Shown: positions 18,805-52,934 of the stretch, piece after piece
How the letters are laid out: every line of letters starts with the position of its first letter
Position numbering within the stretch: position 1 is the stretch's first letter
Assembly (NCBI GenBank): GCA_044892505.1
Contig: CM097883.1
Location: forward strand, 444,540,001 to 444,604,000
Origin: Schmidtea nova
Lineage: Eukaryota
Direction: 5' to 3'
Length of the DNA stretch: 64,000 bases
Notes under the pieces: model-generated
What the model was told of the DNA's origin: nothing
The model's database searches: none
What the model saw: only the letters and a program-made list of their open reading frames with translations
Program-made: the position numbers and the translations under genes

Positions 18805-19287
18805 ATGATTATTAATAAAATGAAACAAGAAATATTTATAATAAATTTGATTGATGGTCTGTTATCTAAAGAAAAAGATAATGAAATCATATCAAGTCTA
18901 CAAATCCTGGTATCCGATGCCGAGGAAATATATAATTCCAAGCCCATCGACTTTTCGTGGATTTTGAATCAAAAATCAACTACAGCAAGAAACATGAATT
19001 TATAAGCGTGTATTATTCGTTATTTGTGTCTGAAATGAAGTGGTCACATGTCATTATGGCTTTCATGTATATAAAACAAATAAGGGATAATTCGAGTTCA
19101 AATTATGAAAATTATTTTCAATGGTCAGCACAGGTCGTTTGTTTTTTATTTAATTTTATTATTAATATTATTTTAGATTATCAAAAGTGAAATATACCCT
19201 TGGGTTCAATAAAACAGGAAATGGAAAAAACTAATAGGATTGGCTGAAAATAGTAGGATTATTAGGAATTTATTAGGATTTATTAGG
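18805..19287 (+). pseudogene. Bcl-2-family protein pseudogene (frameshift, nonsense codon, 43-nt intron, 3' end abutting a Gypsy fragment)
   Basis: BH3-like LQILVSDAEEIY; BH1-like FISVYYSLFVSEMKWSHVIMAFMY (same spacing as [24 protein letters not shown]); after splicing the GT..AG intron 19134-19176, BH2-like WSAQIIKSEIYPWVQ*NRKWKKLI (cf. Bcl-xL [24 protein letters not shown]); frameshift near 18955. Confidence 0.75.
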
Positions 19288-22200
19288 AAAACCCAAACGT
19301 TAACCGTTACCAAAATAACCATAACAACCCCATAGAGCAAAATCCAAATTTTAACCGATACAATAACCCAAACAACAACTATGTACAAAATGGAAATTGG
19401 TGTTACTTTCACAATAGATTTGGGGACAAGGCTTTCAAGAGCAACGCACCTTGTACCTTCCACAACAAAAAGCCGGAAAACAATTAAAGTCGCCAATGAC
19501 AGCAACGACATTTGGTGACTACGAAACATTCACGGTGCAAAGCAACAATTTAAATTTCCTTGTTGATTCCGGTTCAATAGTTAGTTTGTTACCAAGTTAT
19601 TCATTCCAATCCTTAAAAGAAGGAAACTACAACCTGTGCGCAGCAAATGGCAGCAACATCAAAACCTACGGCAAACAACAATTAACCATTATTATAAACA
19701 AAACAAACTACAATTGGGAATTTATCATCGCTGATGTGAAACAGGCCATTTTAGGATCCGATTTCCTAGCGAAATACAACTTGCTAGTAGACTGTCGAAA
19801 TAAAAACGTTATACAAAATACTTTCAAAACAGGAAAATACCCAATCGACAAACCTAACGACAAAAACTTTATAAAAACCTTAACAAATTGTGATATCGGA
19901 GTAATAACCACAAACACAATCAAAATACAGTCAAAAGACTTACAAACCAAAAATACAACAAAATGCGAAAAAAAACACAGGCAATGCAATACCAAAAGAA
20001 ATCAAAGACTTGCTCAAAAACTACCCTACAATCACAGACAAACTATCAATTGAAACCACAAACAAATGCATAACAGAACACGCAATCATAACAAATGGTA
20101 ACCCAGTCCACGCCAAAGTGAGGCAACTAGACAACAAAAAACTCACAATAACCAAAGAAATTTTCGACGATTTACTGGAAAACAAAATTATTCAACACTT
20201 CAATTTAAACTGGTCATCCGCACTTATGCTAAAAGAAAAAGCAAATGGCGAATGGAGAGCATGTGGAGATTAGAGAGCTTTAAACAATATCACAATACCC
20301 GACAAATACCGCATACCTATAATTAACGACGTAATCAACAGGATACATAACCCAAATTATTTCAGTAAAATCGACCTACAAAAAGCATTCAACCAAATTC
20401 CGGTGCGTGAAGAAGACATCAAAAAGACCTCGATAATAACACCGATCGGGCTATATGAATACAACCGAATGCCGTTCGGTTTGAAAAACGCAGCCGCTAC
20501 TTTCCAAATGTTCATGGACCAAATTCTGAGAAACCACAGAAATACGGTAGCGTATTTAGACGACATTTTGATTGCATCAACAAACAGAATCGAACACATA
20601 CAAGACATCAATGAAGTCTTAAAAACCCTCAACAAGCATAATCTCAAAATCAATATAAAGAAATGCGAATTCCTAAAACACCAAGTTAAATTCCTCGGGC
20701 ATATCCTTAACGAAAACGGAACAAGACCGTTAGAGGACAAAATAAAGGCAATCAAAGAATTCCTACTCCCCAAAACAACAAGAGAATTGAGACGTTTTCT
20801 AGGCATGATAAATTTTTATCACAAACATATCCCATATTGCAGCGAAATCCTTGCACCACTTAAATGAGCTAAACAAAATCAAAAGAAACATAAAAATTAA
20901 TTGGAACAAAGACCTAGAAACAGCATTTGAAAAAGTAAAAACTAAACTGTCAAATACAAGCCTATTAAACTACCCTGACCCAAACTTAACCTACATTATC
21001 AACACAGACTGTTCAGGAATAGCTATGGGAGGCACAATATACCAAGAGAAAAACAACGAAAAACAACCCATTGCATTCTTCTCAAAAAAACTCAAAGTAC
21101 ATCAAATGCGATATTCCACTCTCGACAGGGAACTACTGGCAGTACATGATACAATAAAACATTTTCAATACCTTTTAGAAGGAAAAGAGTTCAAAGTGTA
21201 CACTGACCACAAACCTCTAGTAAACGCAATCAACATGAAATTACGGTCACCAAGACAAATAAGACAATTAAATTATATTTCACAATTTAATTGCGAAATA
21301 AAATATATAACAGGAGCAGCAAACATATGCGCAGATACCCTTTCACGAATTGAAACAGAAACAAACGCGATCAGCATGATCCCAATAGTGAATCAAGAAA
21401 CAATGAGAAACAAGCAAGAAACAAGCAAGAAAGAATAATAAAAAACTTTCCAAAACTCAACTCATTAATTCTAAAAGAGTTTGATGGAATTTGGTACGAT
21501 ATTTCAAACGAAAACAACATAAGACTAATAGTACCTGATGAACACAGAATCGAACTCATCAAACAATTTCACAACATATACCACCCAGGAACAAAAGCCA
21601 CATACGAACTCATGCACACAAAAGTGGTATGGCCAAACATGAGAAAGGACATCAAAGAATTCGTCAACTCATGTATAATCTGTCAGAAAAACAAAATAAC
21701 AACAAAAATCGAATTCCAAAAAACAGAATCTTTCCAAACAATACATATAGACATAGTTGGTTCATTACCACCTAACAACAAACACAAATACCTATTGACG
21801 ATAATAGACCGAAACACCAACTGGTTTGAGGCTATCCCAATCAAAGAAATATCAGCAGCAACAATTTGCAGGAAACTAGAAATAAACTGGTTTGCGAGAT
21901 ACGGATGTCCAAAAACAACTATTAGCGACCAAGGCAGACAATTCGAATCCGATCTATTCAAAGGACTATGCACAAAATATAAAATAAAAAAAGTCCGAAC
22001 AACAGCATACAACCCACAGTCAAACGGCAAAGTAGAAAGCCTTCATGGATCCTTAAAACAAGCGATACGGACTAAAGCTAATGACAGAAACTGGATAGAA
22101 AAACTGCCAGAAATACTAATCGGGCTACGAAATAACCCATCTTCGATAAATAACAAAAGCCTTAGTCAACTAACTTTCGGACATACAACAAACCTCCCAA

Positions 22201-22520
22201 ACTTAATAAAAAATATCGAAAACACTGAAAAAACATTCGAAGTCAATGCAAAACGAAACAAAATAAATTTTCGTAAATAGAAATGACAAACAAAAACATA
22301 TCTCATGGTCGAGTCGGTATTAATAAAAAAGCCATTCACCAGCGATTTCGAAGCAAAATACGAAGGTCCCTACAAATTAATCAATCTGAACAAAAATGTG
22401 GGCACCCTACAAATAAACAACAGGGAAATCAAAATCAACATTCGCAGGTTAAAACCTTACCAATATAAAAACCAAGTAAACAAAAAACCCCAAGAGCTTC
22501 CTAAAAAAAGATTAGGTGAT
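19288..22520 (+). mobile_element. Ty3/Gypsy retrotransposon, 5'- and 3'-truncated, pol disrupted
   Basis: gag knuckle CYFHNRFGDKAFKSNAPC; protease FLVDSGS; RT (MPFGLKNAAATFQ, AYLDDILI); RNase H (INTDCSG...YSTLDRELLA...VYTDHKPL); integrase (HHPG...CIIC, HIDIVG, ISDQG, GKVESLH); YEGPY tail; order PR-RT-RH-IN; several stops and frameshifts; no LTR. Confidence 0.95.
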
Positions 22521-23148
22521 AAAACTGAAGTACGGTCCATCAAAGTATCATCTACCCAACAATTCAAGGTCTTATACATTAGTGCTATTCTTCATGTAGT
22601 GTCGTAATAAATATTATATAATAACCTGTGATGATGTTTAACCATCTGGGATAATCAATAGAGGTTTAAAATGTCTGAAAATTGTTATTTTGTTGGTCAA
22701 GTAAAGCACGCTCGGAGTCAGAAAATTAATTGGTAATTTCATAATTCACGAACAACATAATAAATTTTGTATTGTTGTAAATAGGTTCAAGAAACTTTGA
22801 GAGAAGATTGAAATCGACAAAAAACTGTAAATGTTCTGGATTCTCTTTACGTATCACCCGTTTACCGAAAAATTTTGAATTCTAAGAGATTGTAAATTTA
22901 AGGAATTAATCAATTCTGAGGATAAATTAGAAAAGATAAATGAGGTTTGAGAGCAAATGGTCATACACGTTTCGTTCTTAATGATGCAGCAATCTGTAAC
23001 CGAAGGCAAATTCAAAGCGGTGAGCATTTAATAGAATCAAAAACAGTAAATTAAGACGAATAAAATTCACAGCGATTAATTTATTCATAAAAACAAGTAT
23101 AAAAACAGCTGAATATATACACAAATAGATAAATCGGTTTATCCAATT

Positions 23149-24250
23149 CTACCCGAGTCTGCTGTGAACTGATCCTTTGTTGCGATTGGTTTTCATCCGT
23201 TCAGTGCGATTCCTAAATGAGTGATGCTGAACAATCAATTGCCACAACAGCATTCAAACCTGTCAGGAATTCTATCACTATACAATCGCATGCTGGAAAT
23301 CATTTTTCTCCGTTTCCCAGATGATTTCTCGTCCTCCTCGTCGCTGTCATTGCTGCTACTTCTTTCTGACCTGGATTCATCAATTGATGAAACCGGTGAT
23401 GGTTTGCGACCGCTTTTCCTAACTGTAGATTTTTCATTGGTTACATTGTCATTATCGATCAATTCCGGTAAATCGTCATAACCAACTAATCGGGAATCAA
23501 TCTCATCTTCCTTATCCATTGTATTTCGTTTGCGTTTCAATTGTTCACGATAAGATTTCGACACAAATCCTTTCACGTTTCCATACCTAGGGTTGCCATG
23601 AGTGAGATAATATTGACTCTTTCTCTCCGATCCTTTTGTTTTTTCATCGCCTGAATAGTTTTATTAAATCACATTGTACCTATCACGAAATAACAAAAAT
23701 CTCTCAACTCGTATTAGCAATTCTCATAAACATTTTCCCAGCTGTCCCGTCCGGTAGATTTACAACTTGCCTCCAAATTCCATTGGATAAACAAAGCAAT
23801 TCCCGATTTGTTTCTTTTTCTTTCACATCGATTAATTCTTGATCTAACTCAAATTCTTCTGTGAAATTCTCAAAAACTTTAAAACAATTTGTAATTGAAT
23901 CGAAATTCAGATTACAACTGTCATCCGTAATCCATTCAATTTGAAATGGCATAAATTCTATTAGCCATTTTTCGAGGTCTTTAGATGATTTATCTTTGGT
24001 GCCCCACAAATGAATTGTGTTAATTCTCTGTTCACATGGAACGCTTTCGATGTTAGGAATTTTGAAATATTCCAATAAACTATCAGTAAAACCCTTAGTT
24101 AATGGTGAATTGATTTCACATCCACATATTTTTGACTAGTAATAAAATGTCTTATAATAATGGGCATTTAATTGAACTCACAATGCAATTACAGTGATTT
24201 AATTTATAATCAATATTATTGATTTTTGTTGAGATGACTGTTGTTTCCAT
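23149..24250 (-). CDS. NCBP3: Nuclear cap-binding protein subunit 3; exons 24250-24182, 24135-23709, 23650-23260, 23212-23149 (951 nt, 316 aa)
   Basis: IHLWGTKDKSSKDL...PFQIEWITDDSCNLNF RRM-like block; spliced MRIANTSDEKQKDRREKSQYYLTHGNPRYGNVKG matches the NCBP3 SQYY..YGNP.YG.MKG motif; C-terminal SVHSRLG*; three GT-AG introns (46, 58, 47 nt) keep the frame. Confidence 0.9.
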
Positions 24251-24769
24251 CTTTAAATTTTGCGGAAAAATACTATTTATAGGTATTTTATAAACAAAAT
24301 GAATATCAAAGAAATGGCTTTTTCTAGTAAATTTAAAACAATTTTTAATCCTTAATAAATTAATATAATAATTGAAGAAATTTTAATGTAAATTTTATAC
24401 ATTATTGATTTCATGTTATAAAAGTTAATTTCAAATTTTATATCATTCTTAAAAACTCATCATTTAACTATTAATGTTGAGTTAACTATAAATATTTGCA
24501 TTATAAAATAAATTTTGTGAATTACAAAGATACAGGGTTTATTTTTTAAAAAATCATTTTATATAATTTACAAACTTACGCACTGATTATAATATAAATG
24601 TAAATTAAGTAAAAAATTAATTTGTACAAACGTCATCAATGACATTCTTTGACAGCTAATAAATCATCTTGCAATAAAAAATAAATATTTTTAAATTAAT
24701 AAATGCAGATAGGTAAAATTGCTTTACAAAAACATTTAAAAATCATTTTAATTATTTAACTAATTTTAC

Positions 24770-24950
24770 TATCAATAATTCCCATAATGGTAAGACTAGA
24801 TCAAAATTTCTTTAAATAAGTACACAATATTTCGGCACAGCCTTTATCAAGTACACACTTGATACACATTTGACAAAGGCTGTACCAAAATATTGTGTAC
24901 TTATTTAAAGAAATTTTGATCTAGTCTTACCATTATGGGAATTATTGATA
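24770..24950. mobile_element. Hairpin MITE (181 bp, near-perfect palindrome, TA at both ends)
   Basis: TATCAATAATTCCCATAATGGTAAGACTAGATCAAAATTTCTTTAAATAAGTACACAATATTT inverted at both ends; related to 49074-49191. Confidence 0.85.
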
Positions 24951-25119
24951 ATAATATTTAAAAAGGATCAAATGTGAAACAAAAAGATAATTATGATATT
25001 TAACTAATTGAAAATAAAATTTCCATAAAACTTAAATACCCTTAGAATTTTGAATATATAATTCTGTTTCGTTGATGACATGAAATCCTTATTTATCTAG
25101 AAGTAGGCAGTTATGTGGA

Positions 25120-25390
25120 GCATGAGTCATCGCAGAACAAAGGAAGTGACGTCACCCCCCCGGGGGGGTAGGAAATTTTTTATGACTCGTCGATGACGTC
25201 ATCGATGACTCATCGCGATGACTCATCGGCATGACTCATCGATGACTCATCGGCATGACTCATCGATGACTCATCGGCATGACTCATCGATGACTCATCG
25301 GCATGACTCATCGGCATGACTCATCGATGACGCCATCGATGACTCATTTCAAATTTGAATTTTATGACGTCATCGATGACTCATTTCAAA
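25120..25390. promoter_or_regulatory. Terminal array of AP-1 (TGACTCA, 13 copies) and CRE (TGACGTCA, 3 copies) motifs plus a CCCCCCCGGGGGGG palindrome; shorter mirror array at ~40335-40555
   Basis: Motifs counted by eye; regulatory function is inferred. Confidence 0.65.
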
Positions 25391-25439
25391 TTCAAATTTT
25401 GAATTTGAATTTCCAAAGGTCAAATAAGGTCAAACCTTC

Positions 25440-26010
25440 AAACAAGGGTATCATTCGAAAGGTCTTTGAGAGGTGCACACAATGGTCATACCCTCGATGG
25501 TCTATGGTGTGTCATTAACCTTCAAAGGGTCAAAAACCTTCAGATTTTTCAAACCTTGTGTGTAATACATCATTCGAAAGGTAATACCGATGTGCACACA
25601 ATGGTCATACCTTCGAAGGTGTATGGTGTGTGCTCAACCTTCAAGGGGTCAAAATCCTTCAAATATTTTTAAACATTACAAGTTATATATCAAACAAAAG
25701 GTAATTGAGATTTGAGTATGATGGTCAACCCTCGAAGGTGGGTGGTCGACCCTTGAAGGGTCCAAGACTCAAAATTTTAAAAACTATATAATATATGTAT
25801 CAAACAAAAGGTAATTGAAGGGTGCACACAATGGTCATACCCTTAAAGGGTCCAAGGTTCAAATTTTTAAAACTATATAATATGTATATCAAACAAAAGG
25901 TAATTGTGAGATGAGTGTGTGTGTTACAATTTGCCAGACGAGTGTGTGTTACAAATCCTTATTCAAACCTTATAATATACATATCATTCGAAAGGTAATT
26001 ATGGTGTGTG
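25440..26010. repeat. Subterminal degenerate ~90-120-bp repeats (about 6 units, core TCA(TTCG/AACA)AAAGGTAATT...ATGGTCATACCCT); mirror at ~39715-40285
   Basis: Seen directly. Confidence 0.8.
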
Positions 26011-26140
26011 TGTGTTATAATTTTTTCTATTTCCTACCTGAATTACAACAAAGACATTGCAATCCATGTGCAACGAAACAAAGACTAATAAAACTTGTAA
26101 TAATAATTTTTGCACACGTATCTTAGTGTTTAATAAGGAT

Positions 26141-26246
26141 CACAGTACGCATTGAACGCGCGTGGAACGCGCGTTCTTCTCCTCTTGTTGTTTAAGACAA
26201 ATAACAGTACGCATTGAACGCGCGTGGAACGCGCGTTCTTCTTCTC
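26141..26246. repeat. ~60-bp CG-rich tandem repeat (CAGTACGCATTGAACGCGCGTGGAACGCGCGTTCTTCT...) running into an N run; mirror at 39478-39585
   Basis: Two units visible in each arm before the Ns. Confidence 0.8.
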
Positions 26247-27223
26247 NNNNNNNNNNNNNNNNNNNNNNNNNNNNNNNNNNNNNNNNNNNNNNNNNNNNNN
26301 NNNNNNNNNNNNNNNNNNNNNNNNNNNNNNNNNNNNNNNNNNNNNNNNNNNNNNNNNNNNNNNNNNNNNNNNNNNNNNNNNNNNNNNNNNNNNNNNNNNN
26401 NNNNNNNNNNNNNNNNNNNNNNNNNNNNNNNNNNNNNNNNNNNNNNNNNNNNNNNNNNNNNNNNNNNNNNNNNNNNNNNNNNNNNNNNNNNNNNNNNNNN
26501 NNNNNNNNNNNNNNNNNNNNNNNNNNNNNNNNNNNNNNNNNNNNNNNNNNNNNNNNNNNNNNNNNNNNNNNNNNNNNNNNNNNNNNNNNNNNNNNNNNNN
26601 NNNNNNNNNNNNNNNNNNNNNNNNNNNNNNNNNNNNNNNNNNNNNNNNNNNNNNNNNNNNNNNNNNNNNNNNNNNNNNNNNNNNNNNNNNNNNNNNNNNN
26701 NNNNNNNNNNNNNNNNNNNNNNNNNNNNNNNNNNNNNNNNNNNNNNNNNNNNNNNNNNNNNNNNNNNNNNNNNNNNNNNNNNNNNNNNNNNNNNNNNNNN
26801 NNNNNNNNNNNNNNNNNNNNNNNNNNNNNNNNNNNNNNNNNNNNNNNNNNNNNNNNNNNNNNNNNNNNNNNNNNNNNNNNNNNNNNNNNNNNNNNNNNNN
26901 NNNNNNNNNNNNNNNNNNNNNNNNNNNNNNNNNNNNNNNNNNNNNNNNNNNNNNNNNNNNNNNNNNAGATAATTATGATAATAATAATAATANNNNNNNN
27001 NNNNNNNNNNNNNNNNNNNNNNNNNNNNNNNNNNNNNNNNNNNNNNNNNNNNNNNNNNNNNNNNNNNNNNNNNNNNNNNNNNNNNNNNNNNNNNNNNNNN
27101 NNNNNNNNNNNNNNNNNNNNNNNNNNNNNNNNNNNNNNNNNNNNNNNTATAAAAATTCAAACAATCAAAAACTAAAATTGAAATTACTAAATTTTATTGA
27201 ATATAACATTTATAAAATAACAG

Positions 27224-27640
27224 TTATGCATATCGTGCACTGTCAATTCTCCAAATTGGAGTTATAACATCTTTTGTATCGATTTTATATCCCTGAATGA
27301 TTATGGTAATAAACCAATTTTCTTGATCCTTGTATTCGATAGATTGGAAAGCATCATGGAAACGTGTTTTTCGGTTGTTGATCCATATAGTTTCCTTGCA
27401 ACTTAAATTGTTATTGATTTTAAATAAAATTTTATTTAGTGCAACAACATCTTCTTTACATAGATTTGCAGCTAAATTGTCATACAATGACTTTGTTAAT
27501 TTCACTGGATACGACAAACGAAACGGTATTTCTTGTACCAAGAAATAAATTTTGTAATCGTAATACATTTGCACTGGTTTCAATTCATTATTGATTTTTC
27601 TTTCTTCACTGATATCATAAGTTGATTTACGTGCTGGCAT
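27224..27640 (-). CDS. Palindrome ORF-B, left-arm copy (138 aa, unknown; possibly OB-fold-like)
   Basis: Intact ORF in both arms; TATAAATA ~40 nt upstream; diverged paralogue at 17386-17565 with many third-position changes. Confidence 0.75.
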   Translation of the reverse strand: MPARKSTYDISEERKINNELKPVQMYYDYKIYFLVQEIPFRLSYPVKLTKSLYDNLAANLCKEDVVALNKILFKINNNLSCKETIWINNRKTRFHDAFQSIEYKDQENWFITIIIQGYKIDTKDVITPIWRIDSARYA

Positions 27641-28226
27641 TTTTGAAATTGTGACAATCTCTACTAAATGTCTTTGTATTTATAATGATGAGTAATACCT
27701 TTGCCCAATCAAAATGATGCATTCTAACTGCACATGTTATGCATGTCTTCATACATGTCTTTGTTGCAAGCATGTCGTTGTTGCAGGTATGTCTTTGTTG
27801 CATGTCTTTGTCGTGTGTTAATTATACATGTATGTTTATTTTGTTGAAACTGGTTATATAATACATGACTTTGTTGTAATTAATTGATGCATATGCATTT
27901 ATTATTGAAATTGTCTTTATTTATAAAAATTACTATTAAACATAATTCATTTAAATAAAACTTATTTAAAACTTAATAAAAATTACTAGTAAACCTATTT
28001 CATTTCAAAAAAAAAAACTAATTAAAAATTATTTTAAAATTATTTAAAAAATTTATTTAAAAACCGAATAAATAACTCATTAACAAAATAAAAAAAAAAC
28101 TGAAACAGAAAAAACTAAAATAACAATAATAAAAGATTTATTAAATAATAAAATGTGAATACATAAAATGTGTCTACATAAAAAGAAAATACACAAATAA
28201 ATAAAAACATATAACATTTATAATGT

Positions 28227-28919
28227 TTATTCTGCAATCTCTATATTTGAAAGCTTGCGATGGCATTGATCGCAATCAGGCAATTGAGGCGATTCAATAC
28301 ATTTGTTTTCGTCGGATTGATCCATAGCAGTCCAACAACCAAAAGATAATTGTAATTCTGGCAATTCATCTAAATGATCAGGTGAATTATCGCAATCATG
28401 CGATTTATCGCAATCATGCGATTTATCGCAATCATGCGATTTATCGCAATCATGCGATTTATCGCAATCTGGCGATTTTTCATCATCCGACGCTTCGGGT
28501 GTTGAATTTGGCCATTGCTTTGGAATCTCGTCCTCCTCGTCAATTTTTTCCAATTTCTTGGAATTCATTTCAAATTGATGGAGGGCGTTTCGTAACATCC
28601 AGACCCGATACTTCTGTATACGGTCCATACAATGGCCGCATTGGTATGCGCACAAGATGTGCTCCGCCATATATGGCATTTCACTGTCCCGATTAGCCAG
28701 ATGATCCAGTAAGACCTGATGAATATCGATCCCAGTCAGGCATTGAATTTTGTAGGGAAAGAGCTCCGGTGCTGCATAGGTCAGCTTCGGCATCAGCATC
28801 GGATAGATTTCCTCAAGTTTACCGTAAAGTACGGAAATTAATTTCTCTAAAATGAAAAAATTATAAAAATGAAAAAATAGTAAACTTTAAAATTTACCAT
28901 ATTTCATTATCTCGGGCAT
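28227..28919 (-). CDS. Palindrome ORF-A, left-arm copy (exons 28919-28898 and 28846-28227; 213 aa; Cys/His clusters, acidic region, CDKSHD x4)
   Basis: 51-nt GT-AG intron joins MPEIMKY in frame to EKLISVLYGKLEEIYPMLMPK...; upstream TATA and two CCAAT boxes; GC-rich relative to flanks. Confidence 0.78.
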
Positions 28920-29299
28920 TTTGTGATTGTGAATATAAATGATAGCAAAATGTTAATTGTATATATACGATAGAAACACAAGACATGTACAAAATATTAC
29001 ACACTGAACCAATCAGATTCGAGTATGCATAACATGTATTTATTATCGAAATATACATTGGACCAATCAGAATAGTGCATTAATATTGCAGATTTATTGC
29101 AATCATGAGTCACATGTTATTATAAAATCAACAAAGGCTTTATCTTCGATAATTTATTTTATATCGATAATAATATTATCAACTATATTTAAATAATCCC
29201 TAGTTTTTAAACCTAATACAACTACTTTACCACTTGCAAATATACTAACTCACATGTGGTTATATTTTATATATCTCAAAGCTGGAAATATTTTCAGGT

Positions 29300-31970
29300 T
29301 CGTAAACACACTATTAATTTAGACTAATAATGTGAATATCATCACACTGAGCAGGTAAATACATGACAAATTATCATACTATACAGATCCTTACACAAAT
29401 TATTTTTATACTAGAGTACAAATATATCAAAAATATATGAAATATATATATACATGAAATATCAGAACAAAGTATCTTTAAATACATCAAATATTATTAT
29501 ACTATTATGCAAACTACATACAAAATGTCATACTATAGTTTAATAACATAGAAAATCATTAAAAATACACACAAAATATCAAAAATACATATAAATTCAT
29601 CACATACACATATAAAATAACATTACATATATGAAATATTATTACACAAAAGGTTATCACATGAAAGAAATATCTACGTACTATTGAGAATCATACACAC
29701 AAAATATATAGAAATTCATCATACACACACATGAAATATTACTACACAAAAGATTATCACATGCACAAAATATTATCATACTATAATGCAAAATACACAC
29801 AAAATATCATTACATGAAATATTATCACAAAGTAACGTTATATACATGAAATATCATCCGATACATGAAATTTCATCACAAAAAATCATCATACACACAA
29901 ATTATATACAAAGTTTATCATAAATACTAGAAATACAGACAATAATAATCATAAAAAGAAATATTATCACACTAGTGGAAATATATACACAAAAGCTTAT
30001 CAGATGTACGAAATATTATTATTGTACCATAATGCAAAATACAAATAAAATGTCAAAATTAAAAGCATATACACAAAGTATTATCACATTATAGTGTAAA
30101 AACATTAGAAATACATACAAAATATATGAAGTGTCATCACAAAATATCCAAGATTCACAAAGAAAATATTAAAAATACAAACAAAAGATTATCATATTAT
30201 TGTTTGATAACATAAAAATACATAGAAAATCATCAAAATACGTACAAGTATCATTACATAGATAAACTATAATTATCACATACATGAAATATCTTCATAG
30301 AAAATATCAAAAGTACATAGAAATAAATCCTATACACAAAGGATATCATTACACATGTGAAATATCTTTACATACATAAAATGTCATCATGCTTTAATGC
30401 AAATACGGACAAGAAATATCTTCATGTTATAATGCAAATACACATAATATTAAAAGTTATATCATATACACACACAAAGGGTATCATACACATGAAAAGT
30501 TGTCATGTTATAGTCAGTCAAATGAATGAAATATTATCATACTAGTGTAAAATACATACATAATTTCAAAGAATGCATCATACAAAGGATATCATCACAA
30601 TATATCATCATACTATAGTGCAATTACATAGATAATCATCAAAAAGATACAAAAATTAATCAAATTCACAACAATAATCATTAAAGAAATATCTACATAC
30701 ACAAAGAAAATCATATACACATACTTAGAAAATCATCATGTACAAAATATCAAAAGTTCATTACACATACAAAATATAATCACATATATCATAAATCTAT
30801 AATGTAACAGTAATAAATGTTCAAGTAATGAGCTTTTGCACATGAAAACCATCACAAAAGATGTTATGCTTCTAGGGTTCTGATAGCAATGTTCTGTTCG
30901 CAATGTTCTGCTACTGTATAAAATTAATGAAAATTATATGAATGAAAATAAATCTTTCAAACATTACAGTAAATTCTACTTTAAAATGAGATCGAATGCA
31001 TGAAATGTCATCATACTATAGCGAAAATACATGAAAATATTCACAAAGTGACATTAGATACATCAAATATTATCTTACTAGTTTGATAACATTGAGAAAG
31101 AAAATATATAGAAATCATCAAAAATATACACACAAAATATTAAAAATAAGTCATATGAAATGTCATCACAAAATACATAGATATTCATGACACACGTACA
31201 AAATATCAAAAATACAAACATACACAAAATATTATCACATTATAGTGCAAAAATATTAGAAATACATACAAAATATGAAATATATATGAAATGTCATCAC
31301 AAAGTATCATTAAATACATAATATATCATCATGAAATATCATTACATACATGAAATATCATCCTTCTATAGTGCAATTACAAGAATATACCCACACAATA
31401 TCAAACATATATTGAAATTCATCAAAATACATAGAAATTCATCAAACAAGAAATATTCACATAATAATTGTCATTAAAAGTGTATCAGTAAATGTAATAT
31501 GCTTTCACAATTTGTCTGTTACATTGATCGAAGCTCATATGATTAAGCTAATGATTGTTATTTTAGTATATGTGTGAATAATAAACTTTTGCACATAAAA
31601 ACCATCACAAAAGATGTTCTGTTACTAAAGGTTCTGCTAGCAATGGTCTGTTAGCAATGTTCTGCTACTGAATAAAATTGATGAAAATATAACAATAATG
31701 AATTATGAGTGAAAATAAATCTTTCAAACATTACAGTAGGTTCTACTTTAAAGTGAGAAAAACCAATAGATATTTTAAAAGCAATGTAGAAAATATTAAT
31801 GGGTGAGAATATTAGAACAATTAATGTTGAATGAAGTTGAATTGTAACAGTAATAATTAAATAAATGTTCGAGTAATAAGCTTTTGCAGATAAAAACCAT
31901 CACAAAAGATGTTCTGCTACTAGTGTTCTGTTAGCAAGGTTCTGCTACTAGGGTTCTGATAGAAACGTTC
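29300..31970. repeat. ~2.6-kb A/C-rich degenerate low-complexity tract with three copies of a longer subrepeat (~30830, ~31585, ~31875); mirror at ~34220-36890
   Basis: Recurrent AAATATCATCA/CATGAAAT/ATACACA(C)AAAA words; TTTTGCA.AT.AAAACCATCACAAAAGATGTT occurs three times. Confidence 0.75.
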
Positions 31971-32068
31971 GACTACTTATCATATTTCAAGTCTGAATTG
32001 TTGATATAAATCACTGTGACGCATGTTTGAAACACTTGTACTGTCATGTTATGCATGTGTCATGCACT

Positions 32069-32190
32069 TGTATTGCAACTTGATTGCATTTGTATTGCAA
32101 CTTGATTGCATTTGTATTGCAACTTGATTGCATTTGTATTGCAACTTGATTGCATTTGTATTGCAACTTGATTGCATTTGTATTGCAACT
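32069..32190. repeat. 22-bp tandem repeat TGTATTGCAACTTGATTGCATT x5.5; mirror at 33998-34119
   Basis: Seen directly; lies ~500 bp upstream of the inner core promoter. Confidence 0.9.
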
Positions 32191-33135
32191 TAATTACACT
32201 TGTATTTCTTGTGTCATTCACTTGTGATATTCAAGAACATGTATATTTTCTTTCATTTTCCTTAAATATTAATCATTTTTACATAATTTAATTATTTTCA
32301 GAGTAAATTTAATACAAAATAGTAAAGATATTGACAATTCCTGTATTTATTAAGCAATGATTTTGGATACTTTGTGATGATACAAAATGGTTGTAAAATG
32401 ATAAAACATTATTTCCTCCGTAGAAGTGTATAAAACTATAAATTGATTCAAGGAAATATTCAATGGATTTGTCTAATAAGTTAAAAAAGTTGTATTTTAA
32501 TCAAACTGTACATATTGAATCATAGTTTTAAGAGTCAATTTCTTGCAAAAACAAAGCGGATTTTCAAAATTCATGTTATAGTTCTAAATCAAACTTTAAA
32601 ATTTAAAATACCACAACGTAAAATATTTTTAAAGTACCACAACGTAATAAAAGTTGGTATATATCTATTAGAATTTTATAAGTAATTCATTTGAGATAAT
32701 AAATATATTACGTTAGTGGATAATGCCAGATGTTTAAAAAACTCCAACATTAGAAAAAGTATCAAGCAAGTTAACCTTATTCCAAAAAAAAAAAAAAAAA
32801 AAAAAAATATTTATATACATGATAAGGTTTTTCTCTTCAAACTTTTGAATATTTTATAATTTCTTGGAAGATCAAAAAAAAAAAAAAAAATAAAATAAAA
32901 TAAAATATGGTCTGAAATAATATATGAATTAACTCTATTATTTCGTCTCTTCATATTTTTAAATAGCCACAATATTATATATTCTCAATAGCTTTACTAT
33001 AAATAATTTATTTATAAATATTCAAAACGTTTTCCCGTTATTTACTTAATTTTTATTATTCAATAATTACTACAATAATAATAAAAAATTAAATCGGATG
33101 ATAAAAGTCAAAAACTCTTAAAATAATTTATTTCA

Positions 33136-33489
33136 TTAAAATTCTTTAGCTTCTCGCATTTGATTCATCAATTGTTCATTTTCAATTTTCAATTTTAGTA
33201 TTTCTAAATTCTTTCTGCGAAGCTTCAGTATCATTCTTTCCTTTGATTCCCGGTAGAGATTGATCATTTTCTCTAGTTCCTCCATTCGACTCTTAATGTG
33301 AACCTTTGAACCATTGACCTTTGGAATTTCATGACTTTTTCCTAATAAATGTAATAATAATAATAATAAATTTAGAAAAATAAGTATAATTTTACTTGAA
33401 CTTTTAGAACTTTCAGGTAGCGAACTTCCATGTACCGAGATTGATTCATTCTCTGCGTTATTATTATTGCTAGTTTGTTGAGTGTTCAT
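33136..33489 (-). CDS. Palindrome ORF-C (central, single copy); probable 54-nt intron 33395-33342 gives a 99-aa protein with a basic coiled-coil C-terminus
   Basis: ATG 6 nt from the inner end of the right arm; the apparent hydrophobic stretch is an AT-rich GT...TTAG segment; heptad-like RMEELEKMINLYRESKERMILKLRRKNLEILKLKIENEQLMNQM. Confidence 0.7.
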   Translation of the reverse strand: MNTQQTSNNNNAENESISVHGSSLPESSKSSSKIILIFLNLLLLLLHLLGKSHEIPKVNGSKVHIKSRMEELEKMINLYRESKERMILKLRRKNLEILKLKIENEQLMNQMREAKEF

Positions 33490-36400
33490 TGTTTAAAATG
33501 AATTTCTTATAAAATTCTAATAGATATATACCAACTTTTATTACGTTGTGGTACTTTAAAAATATTTTACGTTGTGGTATTTTAAATTTTAAAGTTTGAT
33601 TTAGAACTATAACATGAATTTTGAAAATCCGCTTTGTTTTTGCAAGAAATTGACTCTAAAAACTATGATTCAATATGTACAGTTTGATTAAAATACAACT
33701 TTTTTAACTTATTAGACAAATCCATTGAATATTTCCTTGAATCAATTTATAGTTTTATACACTTCTACGGAGGAAATAATGTTTTATCATTTTACAACCA
33801 TTTTGTATCATCACAAAGTATCCAAAATCATTGCTTAATAAATACAGGAATTGTCAATATCTTTACTATTTTGTATTAAATTTACTCTGAAAATAATTAA
33901 ATTATGTAAAAATGATTAATATTTAAGGAAAATGAAAGAAAATATACATGTTCTTGAATATCACAAGTGAATGACACAAGAAATACAAGTGTAATTAAGT
34001 TGCAATACAAATGCAATCAAGTTGCAATACAAATGCAATCAAGTTGCAATACAAATGCAATCAAGTTGCAATACAAATGCAATCAAGTTGCAATACAAAT
34101 GCAATCAAGTTGCAATACAAGTGCATGACACATGCATAACATGACAGTACAAGTGTTTCAAACATGCGTCACAGTGATTTATATCAACAATTCAGACTTG
34201 AAATATGATAAGTAGTCGAACGTTTCTATCAGAACCCTAGTAGCAGAACCTTGCTAACAGAACACTAGTAGCAGAACATCTTTTGTGATGGTTTTTATCT
34301 GCAAAAGCTTATTACTCGAACATTTATTTAATTATTACTGTTACAATTCAACTTCATTCAACATTAATTGTTCTAATATTCTCACCCATTAATATTTTCT
34401 ACATTGCTTTTAAAATATCTATTGGTTTTTCTCACTTTAAAGTAGAACCTACTGTAATGTTTGAAAGATTTATTTTCACTCATAATTCATTATTGTTATA
34501 TTTTCATCAATTTTATTCAGTAGCAGAACATTGCTAACAGACCATTGCTAGCAGAACCTTTAGTAACAGAACATCTTTTGTGATGGTTTTTATGTGCAAA
34601 AGTTTATTATTCACACATATACTAAAATAACAATCATTAGCTTAATCATATGAGCTTCGATCAATGTAACAGACAAATTGTGAAAGCATATTACATTTAC
34701 TGATACACTTTTAATGACAATTATTATGTGAATATTTCTTGTTTGATGAATTTCTATGTATTTTGATGAATTTCAATATATGTTTGATATTGTGTGGGTA
34801 TATTCTTGTAATTGCACTATAGAAGGATGATATTTCATGTATGTAATGATATTTCATGATGATATATTATGTATTTAATGATACTTTGTGATGACATTTC
34901 ATATATATTTCATATTTTGTATGTATTTCTAATATTTTTGCACTATAATGTGATAATATTTTGTGTATGTTTGTATTTTTGATATTTTGTACGTGTGTCA
35001 TGAATATCTATGTATTTTGTGATGACATTTCATATGACTTATTTTTAATATTTTGTGTGTATATTTTTGATGATTTCTATATATTTTCTTTCTCAATGTT
35101 ATAAAACTAGTAAGATAATATTTGATGTATCTAATGTCACTTTGTGAATATTTTCATGTATTTTCGCTATAGTATGATGACATTTCATGCATTCGATCTC
35201 ATTTTAAAGTAGAATTTACTGTAATGTTTGAAAGATTTATTTTCATTCATATAATTTTCATTAATTTTATACAGTAGCAGAACATTGCGAACAGAACATT
35301 GCTATCAGAACCCTAGAAGCATAACATCTTTTGTGATGGTTTTCATGTGCAAAAGCTCATTACTTGAACATTTATTACTGTTACATTATAGATTTATGAT
35401 ATATGTGATTATATTTTGTATGTGTAATGAACTTTTGATATTTTGTACATGATGATTTTCTAAGTATGTGTATATGATTTTCTTTGTGTATGTAGATATT
35501 TCTTTAATGATTATTGTTGTGAATTTGATTAATTTTTGTATCTTTTTGATGATTATCTATGTAATTGCACTATAGTATGATGATATATTGTGATGATATC
35601 CTTTGTATGATGCATTCTTTGAAATTATGTATGTATTTTACACTAGTATGATAATATTTCATTCATTTGACTGACTATAACATGACAACTTTTCATGTGT
35701 ATGATACCCTTTGTGTGTGTATATGATATAACTTTTAATATTATGTGTATTTGCATTATAACATGAAGATATTTCTTGTCCGTATTTGCATTAAAGCATG
35801 ATGACATTTTATGTATGTAAAGATATTTCACATGTGTAATGATATCCTTTGTGTATAGGATTTATTTCTATGTACTTTTGATATTTTCTATGAAGATATT
35901 TCATGTATGTGATAATTATAGTTTATCTATGTAATGATACTTGTACGTATTTTGATGATTTTCTATGTATTTTTATGTTATCAAACAATAATATGATAAT
36001 CTTTTGTTTGTATTTTTAATATTTTCTTTGTGAATCTTGGATATTTTGTGATGACACTTCATATATTTTGTATGTATTTCTAATGTTTTTACACTATAAT
36101 GTGATAATACTTTATGTATATGCTTTTAATTTTGACATTTTATTTGTATTTTGCATTATGGTACAATAATAATATTTCGTACATCTGATAAGCTTTTGTG
36201 TATATATTTCCACTAGTGTGATAATATTTCTTTTTATGATTATTATTGTCTGTATTTCTAGTATTTATGATAAACTTTGTATATAATTTGTGTGTATGAT
36301 GATTTTTTGTGATGAAATTTCATGTATCGGATGATATTTCATGTATATAACGTTACTTTGTGATAATATTTCATGTAATGATATTTTGTGTGTATTTTGC

Positions 36401-37268
36401 ATTATAGTATGATAATATTTTGTGCATGTGATAATCTTTTGTGTAGTAATATTTCATGTGTGTGTATGATGAATTTCTATATATTTTGTGTGTATGATTC
36501 TCAATAGTACGTAGATATTTCTTTCATGTGATAACCTTTTGTGTAATAATATTTCATATATGTAATGTTATTTTATATGTGTATGTGATGAATTTATATG
36601 TATTTTTGATATTTTGTGTGTATTTTTAATGATTTTCTATGTTATTAAACTATAGTATGACATTTTGTATGTAGTTTGCATAATAGTATAATAATATTTG
36701 ATGTATTTAAAGATACTTTGTTCTGATATTTCATGTATATATATATTTCATATATTTTTGATATATTTGTACTCTAGTATAAAAATAATTTGTGTAAGGA
36801 TCTGTATAGTATGATAATTTGTCATGTGTTTACCTGCTCAGTGTGATGATATTCACATTATTAGTCTAAATTAATAGTGTGTTTACGAACCTGAAAATAT
36901 TTCCAGCTTTGAGATATATAAAATATAACCACATGTGAGTTAGTATATTTGCAAGTGGTAAAGTAGTTGTATTAGGTTTAAAAACTAGGGATTATTTAAA
37001 TATAGTTGATAATATTATTATCGATATAAAATAAATTATCGAAGATAAAGCCTTTGTTGATTTTATAATAACATGTGACTCATGATTGCAATAAATCTGC
37101 AATATTAATGCACTATTCTGATTGGTCCAATGTATATTTCGATAATAAATACATGTTATGCATACTCGAATCTGATTGGTTCAGTGTGTAATATTTTGTA
37201 CATGCCTTGTGTTTCTATCGTATATATACAATTAACATTTTGCTATCATTTATATTCACAATCACAAA

Positions 37269-37925
37269 ATGCCCGAGATAATGAAATATGGTAAATTTTA
37301 AAGTTTACTATTTTTTCATTTTTATAATTTTTTCATTTTAGAGAAATTAATTTCCGTACTTTACGGTAAACTTGAGGAAATCTATCCGATGCTGATGCCG
37401 AAGCTGACCTATGCAGCACCGGAGCTCTTTCCCTACAAAATTCAATGCCTGACTGGGATCGATATTCATCAGGTCTTACTGGATCATCTGGCTAATCGGG
37501 ACAGTGAAATGCCATATATGGCGGAGCACATCTTGTGCGCATACCAATGCGGCCATTGTATGGACCGTATACAGAAGTATCGGGTCTGGATGTTACGAAA
37601 CGCCCTCCATCAATTTGAAATGAATTCCAAGAAATTGGAAAAAATTGACGAGGAGGACGAGATTCCAAAGCAATGGCCAAATTCAACACCCGAAGCGTCG
37701 GATGATGAAAAATCGCCAGATTGCGATAAATCGCATGATTGCGATAAATCGCATGATTGCGATAATTCACCTGATCATTTAGATGAATTGCCAGAATTAC
37801 AATTATCTTTTGGTTGTTGGACTGCTATGGATCAATCCGACGAAAACAAATGTATTGAATCGCCTCAATTGCCTGATTGCGATCAATGCCATCGCAAGCT
37901 TTCAAATATAGAGATTGCAGAATAA
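37269..37925 (+). CDS. Palindrome ORF-A, right-arm copy (exons 37269-37290 and 37342-37925; 201 aa; CDKSHD x2)
   Basis: Mirror of 28227-28919; the unspliced frame hits TAA inside the intron; differs by an in-frame 36-nt repeat indel. Confidence 0.78.
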
Positions 37926-38512
37926 ACATTATAAATGTTATATGTTTTTATTTATTTGTGTATTTTCTTTTTATGTAGACACATTTTATGTATTCACATT
38001 TTATTATTTAATAAATCTTTTATTATTGTTATTTTAGTTTTTTCTGTTTCAGTTTTTTTATTTATTTTGTTAATGAGTTATTTATTCGGTTTTTAAATAA
38101 ATTTTTTAAATAATTTTAAAATAATTTTTAATTAGTTTTTTTTTTTGAAATGAAATAGGTTTACTAGTAATTTTTATTAAGTTTTAAATAAGTTTTATTT
38201 AAATGAATTATGTTTAATAGTAATTTTTATAAATAAAGACAATTTCAATAATAAATGCATATGCATCAATTAATTACAACAAAGTCATGTATTATATAAC
38301 CAGTTTCAACAAAATAAACATACATGTATAATTAACACACGACAAAGACATGCAACAAAGACATACCTGCAACAACGACATGCTTGCAACAAAGACATGT
38401 ATGAAGACATGCATAACATGTGCAGTTAGAATGCGTCATTTTGATTGGGCAAAGGTATTACTCATCATTATAAATACAAAGACATTTAGTAGAGATTGTC
38501 ACAATTTCAAAA

Positions 38513-38929
38513 ATGCCAGCACGTAAATCAACTTATGATATCAGTGAAGAAAGAAAAATCAATAATGAAGTGAAACCAGTGCAAATGTATTACGATTACA
38601 AAATTTATTTCTTGGTACAAGAAATACCGTTTCGTTTGTCGTATCCAGTGAAATTAACAAAGTCATTGTATGACAATTTAGCTGCAAATCTATGTAAAGA
38701 AGATGTTGTTGCACTAAATAAAATTTTATTTAAAATCAATAACAATTTAAGTTGCAAGGAAACTATATGGATCAACAACCGAAAAACACGTTTCCATGAT
38801 GCGTTTCAATCTATCGATTACAAGGATCAAGAAAATTGGTTTATTACCATAATGATTCAGGGATATAAAATCGATACAAAAGATGTTATAACTCCGATTT
38901 GGAGAATTGACAGTGCACGATATGCATAA
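38513..38929 (+). CDS. Palindrome ORF-B, right-arm copy (138 aa)
   Basis: Mirror of 27224-27640 with 3 conservative amino-acid differences (V/L, D/E, M/I). Confidence 0.75.
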   Translation: MPARKSTYDISEERKINNEVKPVQMYYDYKIYFLVQEIPFRLSYPVKLTKSLYDNLAANLCKEDVVALNKILFKINNNLSCKETIWINNRKTRFHDAFQSIDYKDQENWFITIMIQGYKIDTKDVITPIWRIDSARYA

Positions 38930-39184
38930 ATGTTATTTTATAAATGTTATATTCAATAAATTTTAGTATTTTCAATTTTAGTTTTTTGATTGTTCTATTT
39001 TTTATANNNNNNNNNNNNNNNNNNNNNNNNNNNNNNNNNNNNNNNNNNNNNNNNNNNNNNNNNNNNNNNNNNNNNNNNNNNNNNNNNNNNNNNNNNNNNN
39101 NNNNNNNNNNNNNNNNNNNNNNNNNNNNNNNNNNNNNNNNNNNNNNNNNNNNNNNNNNNNNNNNNNTTATTATATTTTTTATAA

Positions 39185-39263
<79 letters not shown>

Positions 39264-42184
39264 TTTTTATAAGTTTCTATTNNNNNNNNNNNNNNNNNNN
39301 NNNNNNNNNNNNNNNNNNNNNNNNNNNNNNNNNNNNNNNNNNNNNNNNNNNNNNNNNNNNNNNNNNNNNNNNNNNNNNNNNNNNNNNNNNNNNNNNNNNN
39401 NNNNNNNNNNNNNNNNNNNNNNNNNNNNNNNNNNNNNNNNNNNNNNNNNNNNNNNNNNNNNNNNNNNNNNNNNNNNNGAGAAGAAGAACGCGCGTTCCAC
39501 GCGCGTTCAATGCGTACTGTTATTTGTCTTAAACAACAAGAGGAGAAGAACGCGCGTTCCACGCGCGTTCAATGCGTACTGTGATCCTTATTAAACACTA
39601 AGATACGTGTGCAAAAATTATTATTACAAGTTTTATTAGTCTTTGTTTCGTTGCACATGGATTGCAATGTCTTTGTTGTAATTCAGGTAGGAAATAGAAA
39701 AAAATATAACACACACACACCATAATTACCTTTCGAATGATATGTATATTATAAGGTTTGAATAAGGATTTGTAACACACACTCGTCTGGCAAATTGTAA
39801 CACACACACTCATCTCACAATTACCTTTTGTTTGATATACATATTATATAGTTTTAAAAATTTGAACCTTGGACCCTTTAAGGGTATGACCATTGTGTGC
39901 ACCCTTCAATTACCTTTTGTTTGATACATATATTATATAGTTTTTAAAATTTTGAGTCTTGGACCCTTCAAGGGTCGACCACCCACCTTCGAGGGTTGAC
40001 CATCATACTCAAATCTCAATTACCTTTTGTTTGATATATAACTTGTAATGTTTAAAAATATTTGAAGGATTTTGACCCCTTGAAGGTTGAGCACACACCA
40101 TACACCTTCGAAGGTATGACCATTGTGTGCACATCGGTATTACCTTTCGAATGATGTATTACACACAAGGTTTGAAAAATCTGAAGGTTTTTGACCCTTT
40201 GAAGGTTAAGGACACACCATAGACCATCGAGGGTATGACCATTGTGTGCACCTCTCAAAGACCTTTCGAATGATACCCTTGTTTGAAGGTTTGACCTTAT
40301 TTGACCTTTGGAAATTCAAATTCAAAATTTGAATTTGAAATGAGTCATCGATGACGTCATAAAATTCAAATTTGAAATGAGTCATCGATGACGTCATCGA
40401 GGAGTCATGCCGATGAGTCATGCCGATGACGTCATCTACGAGTCATGCCGATGAGTCATCGCGATGAGTCATCGATGACGTCATCGATGAGTCATAAAAA
40501 ATTTCCTAACCCCCGGGGGGGTGACGTCATTTCCTTTGTTCTGCGATGACTCATGCTCCACATAACTGCCTACTTCTAGAAAACAAAAATAAACGGTAAT
40601 GTTTATTTTTTTAACTTGATCTCTATGACTGTTTATAAACTATGTTGATTTTAATTAAATTATGGCTTTGCAAAATCAATTTGTTGGGGTTAGTATAAAA
40701 ATCACAAAAGTAACAAGAAAGAATAGTAAAAGCAAAGAAATATCAAAATAAATAAAAGTGCAAAAATTGATTAAAATTTATCAAAAAATTATCAAAAAAT
40801 TATCAAAAATTTAAAATTAATATTCATCGGGGGAAATGTGTATGGTTGAATGCCAAATCAAAAGACTAATCCAAAAAATAATAATAGAAATTTAGTAAGG
40901 ATTCTCCAGAGAAAGTTATATAATAAAATCAAACTAATTAAAATTTATTAATAGCTCAATAGGAAGCCCAAGACAATGGGAAACCCGAGCGATGAGGAAA
41001 GGCCGAGCGCAGTAGAGACCCGAGAGATCAAAATCGGGAGATTGCGCAGGGCAATTAAAGAAAAGCCACCCGAGCGCAATCACAATAATTTGTTGGTAAG
41101 TCATTTAAGCCCGGGATTGGGTAACGTTTAGTTATCGATAAAACTTAATTGTCATTTGCGAGAGATATAAAAGACAGCGCAAAGCAGAGGACGAGGCCGA
41201 CGAACTGAGAGTTGAAAACAGAAAGTATTAAAAGTTCCTGAAAAATAACAAATAGAGATCTTGAGGAAATGGAAAGAGACAAAGTGAGGAGAATAATTTA
41301 TAACCGTCATAACTAGAGAAAAAAATCTGAATCTGGAAGAGAGGGCAAATTTGTCAGGCATGTACTTAACAGAAGTTGTAATTTGTGGTAATCGTTAAAT
41401 AAATTGTTCTGTGTTGGGTTCATTGATTTCGATAATTAAAGAACACGAGGAGTCAGGTCAGTAAACCGATCTTAAACAGAATAATAACCCAGCAAATTTA
41501 ATTAAACACAACCATTAAATTGATAGGTTGCTGGTAAAAAAATAATTCTAACTGTTGCTATGGCTCCATTCTTCAGCAACCCTACATATAAACCTTGCAA
41601 AAACACATTGCTATCCATCATGTAGTAATATTTTCAAAAAGTGAGGTTCGAGGGGGTCGAAACTATAATTGACCAAATGTCTCGAATAAGTTCAAGGGCG
41701 ATCGACAGAAGGTATAATGGTAATTTTTGTCCAGCACTTAATCTATCTCCTATAGCAATTTGTTCAAATTCTCTTAAAAATTGAAAATAAATATTTATAA
41801 ATCAATTATAAATAAATAACTAAATAAATAATTGAAGATTGACTCGATACTTGATTTCTAGAGTGGTTCAAATATAATGCACTTAAGTAAAAAAGTATTC
41901 GATTTAATAATTTCGTTTCGATGGTTAAACTCGCGAACTATTGTAGGGATTTATCTTGAATTAAATGTTAATTTAATAAATAAGTAAATAAAATAAGTAA
42001 ATAATTGTATACATTGAATTGAAGCTATATAAACTACACATTCATAACATTATTCATGCAAAAAACAAAGCAAGTTTTTAATTCCATGGACACACGAATA
42101 AATGAAATCAAATATCATAGGGGAAGTCCAATTTTATTTCAGATTTTGTAGACTTTCAGTAAAACTAATTTAATTTTTTGAGGA

Positions 42185-49015: not shown

Positions 49016-49073
49016 TATTATTATTATTATTATTATCATAATTATCTTTTTTCACCTTTGATCTTTTTTTATT

Positions 49074-52928: not shown

Positions 52929-52934
52929 AGTCAC

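Follow-up and report, generated by a model that had tools for sequence, protein, structure and literature searches.

General features of Maverick/Polinton elements are a 6-bp target-site duplication and inverted repeats of hundreds of nucleotides (PMC8969392). In vertebrates, Mavericks are 12.7–24.6 kb in size, possess inverted repeats of 46–1,447 bp, and are bounded by perfect 6-bp duplications, with end motifs of either (AGT)2//(ACT)2 or (AG)3//(CT)3; this terminal repetition has been interpreted as underlying jumping-back in protein-primed replication (PMC8097293). A 64,000-nucleotide stretch of contig CM097883.1 (assembly GCA_044892505.1; positions 444,540,001–444,604,000, forward strand), the whole of which is referred to here as the window, contains a palindromic element of 15,473 nt (including 1,231 estimated N) that resembles the Mavericks in several respects. 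These are its AGT-repeat-type ends, its compatible 6-nt flank, its terminal inverted repeats, its size of 15.5 kb (inside the 12.7–24.6 kb range), and the orphan open reading frames (ORFs) beside its ends, where vertebrate Mavericks have accessory regions. It differs from Mavericks in having no genes for a protein-primed polymerase, integrase, ATPase, protease, or capsid; in its inverted repeats of ~7.1–7.6 kb, which are 5 times the published maximum; in that only 5% of it is unique, the arms being rich in tandem repeats; and in its lack of detectable sequence homology. The reading we favour is that of an integrated, non-autonomous Maverick/Polinton-type derivative, built almost wholly from one end of its parent, and to this we assign roughly even chances.

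Long inverted repeats and missing core genes have each been described in relatives of these elements. The polintons of butterflies have gene-bearing inverted repeats of ~2 kb, and derivatives without polB are apparently still spreading (preprint 10.1101/2025.02.07.637071). The present element likewise has repeats long enough to duplicate genes; however, the butterfly elements duplicate core genes (hexon, adenain) and are mostly unique, whereas the present element duplicates orphan genes and has almost no unique sequence. Tlr1 of Tetrahymena is Polinton-related, and such elements are sometimes called non-autonomous polintons (PMC5499653). Both Tlr1 and the present element are integrated, have inverted-repeat ends, and lack a protein-primed polymerase, but Tlr1 still has genes for capsid proteins, a packaging ATPase, an integrase, and a helicase, none of which is encoded here.

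The closest parallel in overall shape comes from defective viral genomes. By review definitions, a near-full-length palindrome made from one genome end is a snap-back defective genome (PMC13506859); here, the two halves are complementary and the loop between them is small (803 nt; 5%). Shared with snap-back and copy-back genomes are the reverse-complementary halves, an apparent origin from one end, little coding capacity, and a presumed dependence on a helper, whereas those genomes are mainly known from negative-strand RNA viruses and as free molecules, and the present element is chromosomal DNA with an 803-nt loop. Incomplete adenovirus particles carry left-end DNA (Daniell 1976, as cited in PMC5033970), and the adenovirus packaging domain is made up of a series of short repeats immediately internal to one of the inverted terminal repeats (PMC5033970). 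Adenovirus is a protein-primed linear replicon with one-end defective molecules, and its packaging repeats are formally like the subterminal arrays described below; the DNA of its incomplete particles is not integrated, unlike this element. Protein-primed linear plasmids of yeast yield palindromic deletion derivatives, and long inverted duplications are said to occur in such one-end defective molecules.

At 28.8% G+C over its read bases, the window is AT-rich, and it is crowded with transposon debris. The initial annotation had described within it a 15.5-kb palindrome at 25096–40580, with an 803-nt spacer and TCTAGA at both borders beside unrelated flanks, and each of these points was borne out. 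By BLAST and by global alignment the arms are reverse complementary (Table 1), and their homology ends at 32692 and 33496, on either side of the spacer. When the left half was compared by BLAST with the reverse complement of the right half, 25096–25298 paired with 40580–40377 (93.7% identity), 25231–26246 with 40495–39478 (98.8%), and 27148–32692 with 39006–33496 (98.97%), and identity reaches ~99.9% over the unique inner 5 kb. Global alignment places 19 mismatches and 3 indel events in the inner 5.5 kb, with 12 of the mismatches falling within 500 nt beside the N gap and only ~6 across the other 5 kb. In the outer 1.15 kb there are 10 mismatches (9 within the terminal 500 nt) and 2 indel events. 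The large inter-arm indels, of 47 and 36 nt, reflect different numbers of tandem-repeat copies. The sequences at the two arm/spacer junctions are not the same, and there is a one-base difference between the arms 10 nt from the junction. Such single-base and repeat-number differences, together with the distinct junctions, show that there are two physical copies rather than one sequence printed twice, and the structure is real as far as sequence can show.

Each arm contains an unread stretch. These lie at exactly mirrored positions (bounded by 26246/27148 on the left and by 39478/39006 on the right), and the read islands within them, once mirrored, both consist of (AAT)n; it was therefore one and the same microsatellite-rich segment that could not be read in either arm. 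The N estimates for this segment disagree (875 versus 356), and length estimates are thus unreliable. The N runs are crossed by no genuine ORF, and the long "ORFs" listed in them consist of runs of X.

The unread stretches bear on a different explanation, namely, that repeat copies were mislinked across the N runs during assembly or scaffolding, or that a chimeric or amplification turn-around was sequenced, in which case there would be no real palindrome. The N runs do break each arm at the microsatellite and leave the outer 1.1 kb and the flanks joined by scaffolding only; moreover, the gap estimates for one and the same segment are discordant, the family is repeated, and the inner 4.3 kb is nearly identical between arms, as if one sequence had been placed twice. 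Such an artefact is nevertheless improbable. The sequence from 27148 to 39006 is uninterrupted through both inner arms and the spacer, the arm/spacer junctions differ and have a base difference close by, and the outer contigs are distinct, in that they adjoin different flanks and are set apart by 10 mismatches and a repeat difference of 47 nt. Furthermore, the order of gene, microsatellite gap, arrays, and end recurs in a diverged third copy.

At each border of the element, TCTAGA is followed by AGTAGGCAGTTATGTGG. The string AGTAGGCAG lies directly inside TCTAGA at both ends, and the flanks are unlike each other or anything else in the window. The window holds two copies, and no more, of a 34-nt terminal string for which 0 would be expected. 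The main ends begin with AGTAGG, which matches 5 of the 6 positions of the (AGT)2 motif documented for vertebrate Mavericks. Beyond the window, the IMG/VR and JGI metagenome collections do not contain the terminal 24-mer, and in a full-text literature search the terminal string matched nothing but unrelated primers and siRNAs.

Beyond TCTAGA, the flanks have no direct repeat in common, and a duplication could be only 6, 4, or 2 nt long. TCTAGA is present on both sides as a 6-bp duplication would have it, but it is palindromic and so also extends the inverted repeat; being self-complementary, it is indistinguishable in this copy from the last 6 nt of that repeat. At a third end of the same family the flank is different, and comparison of the three ends suggests that TCTAGA is probably the target-site duplication and not part of the inverted repeat. 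The initial annotation had held that TCTAGA would belong to the repeat if all other copies ended in it, and the third end speaks, weakly, for the duplication. A paralogous empty site was sought within the window and not found. A TA or CTAG duplication, as of a Tc1/mariner-like or other class of element, was set aside: symmetry by itself would allow it, but the third end shares sequence only from AG(N)AGTAGG inward. A cloning chimera at an XbaI site is unsupported; TCTAGA is absent inside the element, but at the rate observed in the window only ~1–2 sites would be expected in its unique sequence and the absence is not significant. Nor do the arms appear to be two independent insertions, there being no terminal motif at their inner ends.

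The third end is decayed and solitary (17350–18421; Table 1). It begins with a broken paralogue of ORF138, one of the two genes of the arms, which lacks its N-terminal part and points outward as the intact copies do. Downstream of this fragment come an N run at the same relative place, other sequence, an 11-nt tandem array, and the terminus, as in the arms. The array is clean (13.5 copies) and the terminus lies ~85 nt further on. There, AGTAGTAGG is followed by the same short motif as follows AGTAGG at the main ends; the terminus reads as a perfect AGTAGT and then AGG, and so matches the (AGT)2 motif at 6 of 6 positions. The combined end pattern has 3 matches in the window, exactly at the three ends, and none in 100 shuffles, figures that overstate the case in that the pattern was chosen post hoc; the third end's position and orientation relative to the gene fragment are free of that choice. 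Its flank is not TCTAGA, and no left partner was found in the window. Just beyond it, at 18820–19005 (+), lies an ORF of ~61 codons with TATA-like and CCAAT-like motifs upstream, as seen by eye.

The third end fixes the terminus of the family independently, and both arms stop at that terminus, which a duplication driven by the host would have no reason to do. This weighs against the possibility that fold-back repair or template switching in the host produced an inverted segmental duplication of DNA that held an old element end, the resulting palindrome being immobile. In its favour, break repair commonly yields large palindromes whose unique centre is short; the near-identical arms indicate a recent event or gene conversion; and ORF117, together with its upstream region, runs from the right arm into the spacer, as if the right arm and spacer were original. 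A host-made duplication should, however, overshoot or fall short of the element end, whereas both arms end at the same base, at the terminal motif, and no flanking DNA beyond 6 nt has been duplicated. We regard this origin as very unlikely.

From the end inward, each arm consists of ~80 nt of unique sequence, an 11–13-nt array, longer tandem repeats, the unread microsatellite, ORF138, and ORF190, followed by ~3.2 kb of A-rich degenerate minisatellite with 250-nt units and a 22-nt array, and then by ~0.45 kb of unique sequence up to the spacer. Two short cores recur in the subterminal arrays: the terminal 355 nt hold 13 copies of the 7-mer and 3 of the 8-mer on the left and 7 and 5 copies, respectively, on the right, compared with 3 and 0 in the other 63 kb (the cores counted are substrings of the repeat units that repeat tools printed from this window). 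The mix of core variants thus differs between the terminal arrays (25096–25450 and 40226–40580), making the ends the least similar part of near-identical arms. We take the cores to resemble binding sites of AP-1- and CREB-type bZIP factors, as a lead to candidates only. In the left inner arm (29100–32250) there is no credible ORF, and an 82-codon ORF located there has no Pfam match. The 22-nt array of this arm, at 32063–32206, is weakly similar to 18640–18760 (83% over 42 nt), just outside the presumed end of the third copy, possibly by chance.

Arms that consist, as these do, mostly of tandem and degenerate repeats are as compatible with a foldback-type transposon as with a virus remnant. The element could accordingly be a DNA transposon of this type from another or an unknown superfamily, served by a cut-and-paste transposase encoded elsewhere, in which case the likeness of its ends to those of Mavericks would be due to chance; we judge this unlikely, though by no means negligible. 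The palindrome does have long inverted repeats composed of tandem subrepeats around a short middle, with few genes and no enzymes. Its arms open with graded tandem repeats (11–13, 24, 37, 119, 89, and 62 nt) and continue into degenerate minisatellite, and a second, small foldback-like structure in the window (50700–51556) indicates that such elements exist in this genome. Inverted repeats of this kind, long and internally repetitive, are the hallmark of Foldback, Galileo, and similar elements (PMC3573991), which also have a short middle and non-autonomous copies. The present element departs from them in duplication length and end motif, and its arms, which hold two intact genes, are several-fold longer. 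Foldback duplicates 9 bp and Galileo 7 bp upon insertion, and neither length fits a locus where only 6, 4, or 2 nt are possible. The AGT-type end motif and 6-nt flank fit Mavericks specifically, and the inner 5 kb of the arms contains the two genes and not only repeats. In the overall weighing, only the end motif and the 6-nt flank speak against a foldback transposon.

The initial annotation had reported no genes for replication, integration, or capsid, and this was confirmed, as the long ORFs tested are without a Pfam match and the longest open stretch in the element is 219 codons. Enzymes hidden in the N runs, which it had also considered, would have to fit into at most 0.9 kb per arm by estimate, too short for a polymerase, with the proviso that these estimates are unreliable. 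There is no retroviral-type (rve) integrase in the element; the rve matches in the window (21354–22277 and 54422–55093) adjoin Gypsy-type reverse transcriptase (RT)/RNase H sequence and lie outside it. A capsid morphogenesis module (major and minor capsid proteins, ATPase, protease) likewise has no family match among the element ORFs.

What the element does encode is two well-supported orphan ORFs per arm, of 138 and 190 amino acids and both directed outward, in addition to one doubtful ORF in the spacer. In 300 block shuffles, the open length of ORF138 (151 codons) was reached by the longest ORF once, that of ORF190 (219 codons) never, and that of ORF117 (118 codons) 10 times; ORF117 is doubtful as a gene. 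Both arm genes are intact in both arms, the 36-nt inter-arm difference in ORF190 being two in-frame repeat units. The genes had originally been described as small, spliced, and unknown: they are indeed orphans, but ORF138 looks unspliced, and ORF190 has perhaps one short 5′ exon, seen by eye upstream and predicted by no tool. By eye, too, ORF138 and ORF190 have upstream what we take to be TATA-like and CCAAT-like motifs and downstream what is presumably an AATAAA signal.

Searches with these proteins returned no relatives. ORF138, ORF190, and ORF117 are all without a Pfam match, homologue, solved relative, or usable model. ORF138 has no homologue in a word-index search of 5.8 billion proteins, metagenome contigs, and viral contigs, ORF190 has 0 matches among 1.84 billion protein representatives, and an exact-protein look-up of five ORF versions gave no record. 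A PDB sequence search yielded no solved relative of ORF138 and, for ORF190, only a non-significant match (E = 0.21). AlphaFold models were too poor for use (pLDDT 33 for ORF138 and 36 for ORF190), and Rfam and tRNA scans of the window found nothing. The two outward orphan genes are probably accessory genes of the end region of the parent.

How a Maverick/Polinton-type derivative of this shape could arise may be outlined as follows. While a linear parent was being replicated or its end repaired, the copying strand would have turned back ~0.8 kb beyond the present arm; equivalently, one end might have been replaced by an inverted copy of the other. Either event would produce a unit-length molecule with two identical ends. 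The start of ORF117 lies 7 nt from the right arm and its upstream region lies within that arm, which suggests that the right arm and spacer retain the original order, with the left arm as the copy. Protein-primed initiation with jumping-back would make use of the AGT-AGG terminal repetition, and the dense 11–13-nt subterminal arrays may be bound by a factor, supplied in trans, for replication, packaging, or integration. A retroviral-type integrase, also acting in trans, could then join the two identical ends to the chromosome, leaving the 6-bp duplication, with polymerase, integrase, and capsid all being provided by an autonomous relative. Both the copy-back origin and the mobilisation in trans are inferred. 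A length of 15,473 nt, within the Maverick size range, would be as expected if a defective molecule must still fit a capsid. The fullest form of this scheme—an endogenised snap-back defective genome of a Maverick/Polinton-like virus, in which a unit-length palindrome arose by protein-primed replication, was maintained by a helper, and was integrated in the normal way—is possible but short of probable. The variant is unusual but of a known kind, and the origin is attractive, if unproven.

The Polinton-type character of the ends, as initially proposed, is strengthened by the resemblance of AGTAGG to (AGT)2 and by the third end, and is weakened in that no Polinton protein or DNA homology was found. 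A number of points count against a Maverick/Polinton-type derivative. The link to Mavericks, drawn from sequence, consists of a 6-nt end motif, a 6-nt flank, and the architecture; homology to any Polinton gene or repeat was not obtained, and scans of public protein and metagenome/viral collections found no other copies, parent, or helper. TCTAGA equals its own reverse complement, as do 2.8% of the 6-mers in the window, and a single palindromic copy does not prove a duplication. Vertebrates are the group for which the end motif is documented, and the host has an AT-rich genome and is probably an invertebrate. With ~81% gene identity and barely alignable ends, the third end is a diverged relative and gives only weak testimony on where exactly the boundary lies. 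Each arm has more than 3 kb of degenerate minisatellite, an odd feature for a virus genome of limited size and one that typifies foldback transposons. Finally, the outer ~1.1 kb of each arm, along with its flank, is tied to the central palindrome by scaffolding alone.

The linear, protein-primed viral replication of animal Mavericks/Polintons is still argued from gene content. Were the element a snap-back derivative of such a virus, the combination of its shape, family ends, 6-bp duplication, and near unit length would be indirect but concrete evidence of that lifestyle. It would constitute a chromosomal record of free linear replication and of forms like defective-interfering genomes, and a new kind of non-autonomous partner; Mavericks would then spawn gene-less parasites, as ordinary transposons and viruses do. 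For genome annotation, it would be a warning that Maverick-derived DNA can escape every protein-based search. The phrase "non-autonomous polinton" appears in a single paper among the Creative Commons PubMed Central papers and bioRxiv preprints searched, which shows that it is little mentioned there and does not mean that such derivatives are undescribed.

Table 1. Positions of the palindromic element, its parts, and the related third end (window coordinates)
Feature	Position	Strand	Details
Left candidate 6-bp target-site duplication, TCTAGA	25096–25101	.	Identical to right
Left arm	25102–32692	+	7,591 nt including 875 N
Left terminal unique segment	25102–25181	+	AGTAGG end motif, then short C-run/G-run palindrome
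Left subterminal array, 11–13-nt repeats	25182–25347	+	Unit ATGACTCATCG; 24-nt super-unit
Longer tandem repeats, left (37, 119, 89, 62 nt)	25327–26246	+	Mirror at 39478–40397
Left unread stretch	26247–27147	.	Two N runs around a 26-nt (AAT)n island
ORF138, left copy	27224–27640	-	Points to left end; orphan
ORF190, left copy	28227–28799	-	Outward; in-frame 18-nt repeat x5
Left inner arm	29100–32250	+	A-rich degenerate minisatellite, three ~250-nt units, 22-nt array x6.5; mirror ~33938–37088
Spacer (palindrome loop)	32693–33495	.	Unique; 803 nt, 5% of element length
ORF117	33136–33489	-	Spacer; starts 7 nt from right arm; low-complexity and heptad-rich tail
Right arm	33496–40574	-	7,079 nt including 356 N; reverse complement of left arm
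ORF190, right copy	37389–37925	+	178 amino acids; 18-nt repeat x3, in frame
ORF138, right copy	38513–38929	+	Points to right end; protein 97.8% identical to left
Right unread stretch	39007–39477	.	Two N runs around a 115-nt (TTA)n island; mirror of left
Right subterminal array, 11–13-nt repeats	40377–40495	-	47 nt shorter; other mix of two core variants
Right terminal unique segment	40496–40574	-	Mirror of 25102–25181
Right candidate 6-bp target-site duplication, TCTAGA	40575–40580	.	Identical to left
Decayed solitary related end	17350–18421	+	Gene fragment, N run, 11-nt array, terminus AGTAGTAGG on minus strand
Broken ORF138 paralogue	17350–17562	+	C-terminal 71 residues only; 70% protein and 81% DNA identity; 3 in-frame stops

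The remainder of the window contains several other mobile-element remnants. Ty3/Gypsy pol sequence (protease, RT, RNase H, and integrase) extends over several frames at 19418–22604 (+) and 52050–55093 (+), and the best outside relatives of the Gypsy RT are only 56% identical; the relatives of the window retroelements are invertebrate sequences, and the host is therefore probably an invertebrate animal. A Mos1-type mariner transposase (HTH_48, Transposase_1/DDE_3) occupies at least two frames at 2323–3573 (+). Direct repeats of ~208 nt (11502–11709 and 13193–13401), 98–99% identical and 1.69 kb apart, surround protease-like ORFs and are probably those of a small or deleted long terminal repeat (LTR) element.

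The only host-like gene piece in the window is an NCBP3-domain exon at 23707–24135 (-), and the palindromic element lies ~1 kb upstream of it. Between them, at 24762–24958, is a hairpin of 197 nt (89-nt arms and a 19-nt loop) of miniature inverted-repeat-like type, with related copies at 49034–49214 and 10507–10561. The small foldback-like structure consists of a 22-nt array at 50700–51094 (17.8 copies) and its reverse complement at 51484–51556 (3.4 copies), ~390 nt apart, and its middle encodes a Cys/His-rich motif, recognised by eye. At 59586–59808, a 114-nt unit is perfectly duplicated in tandem.

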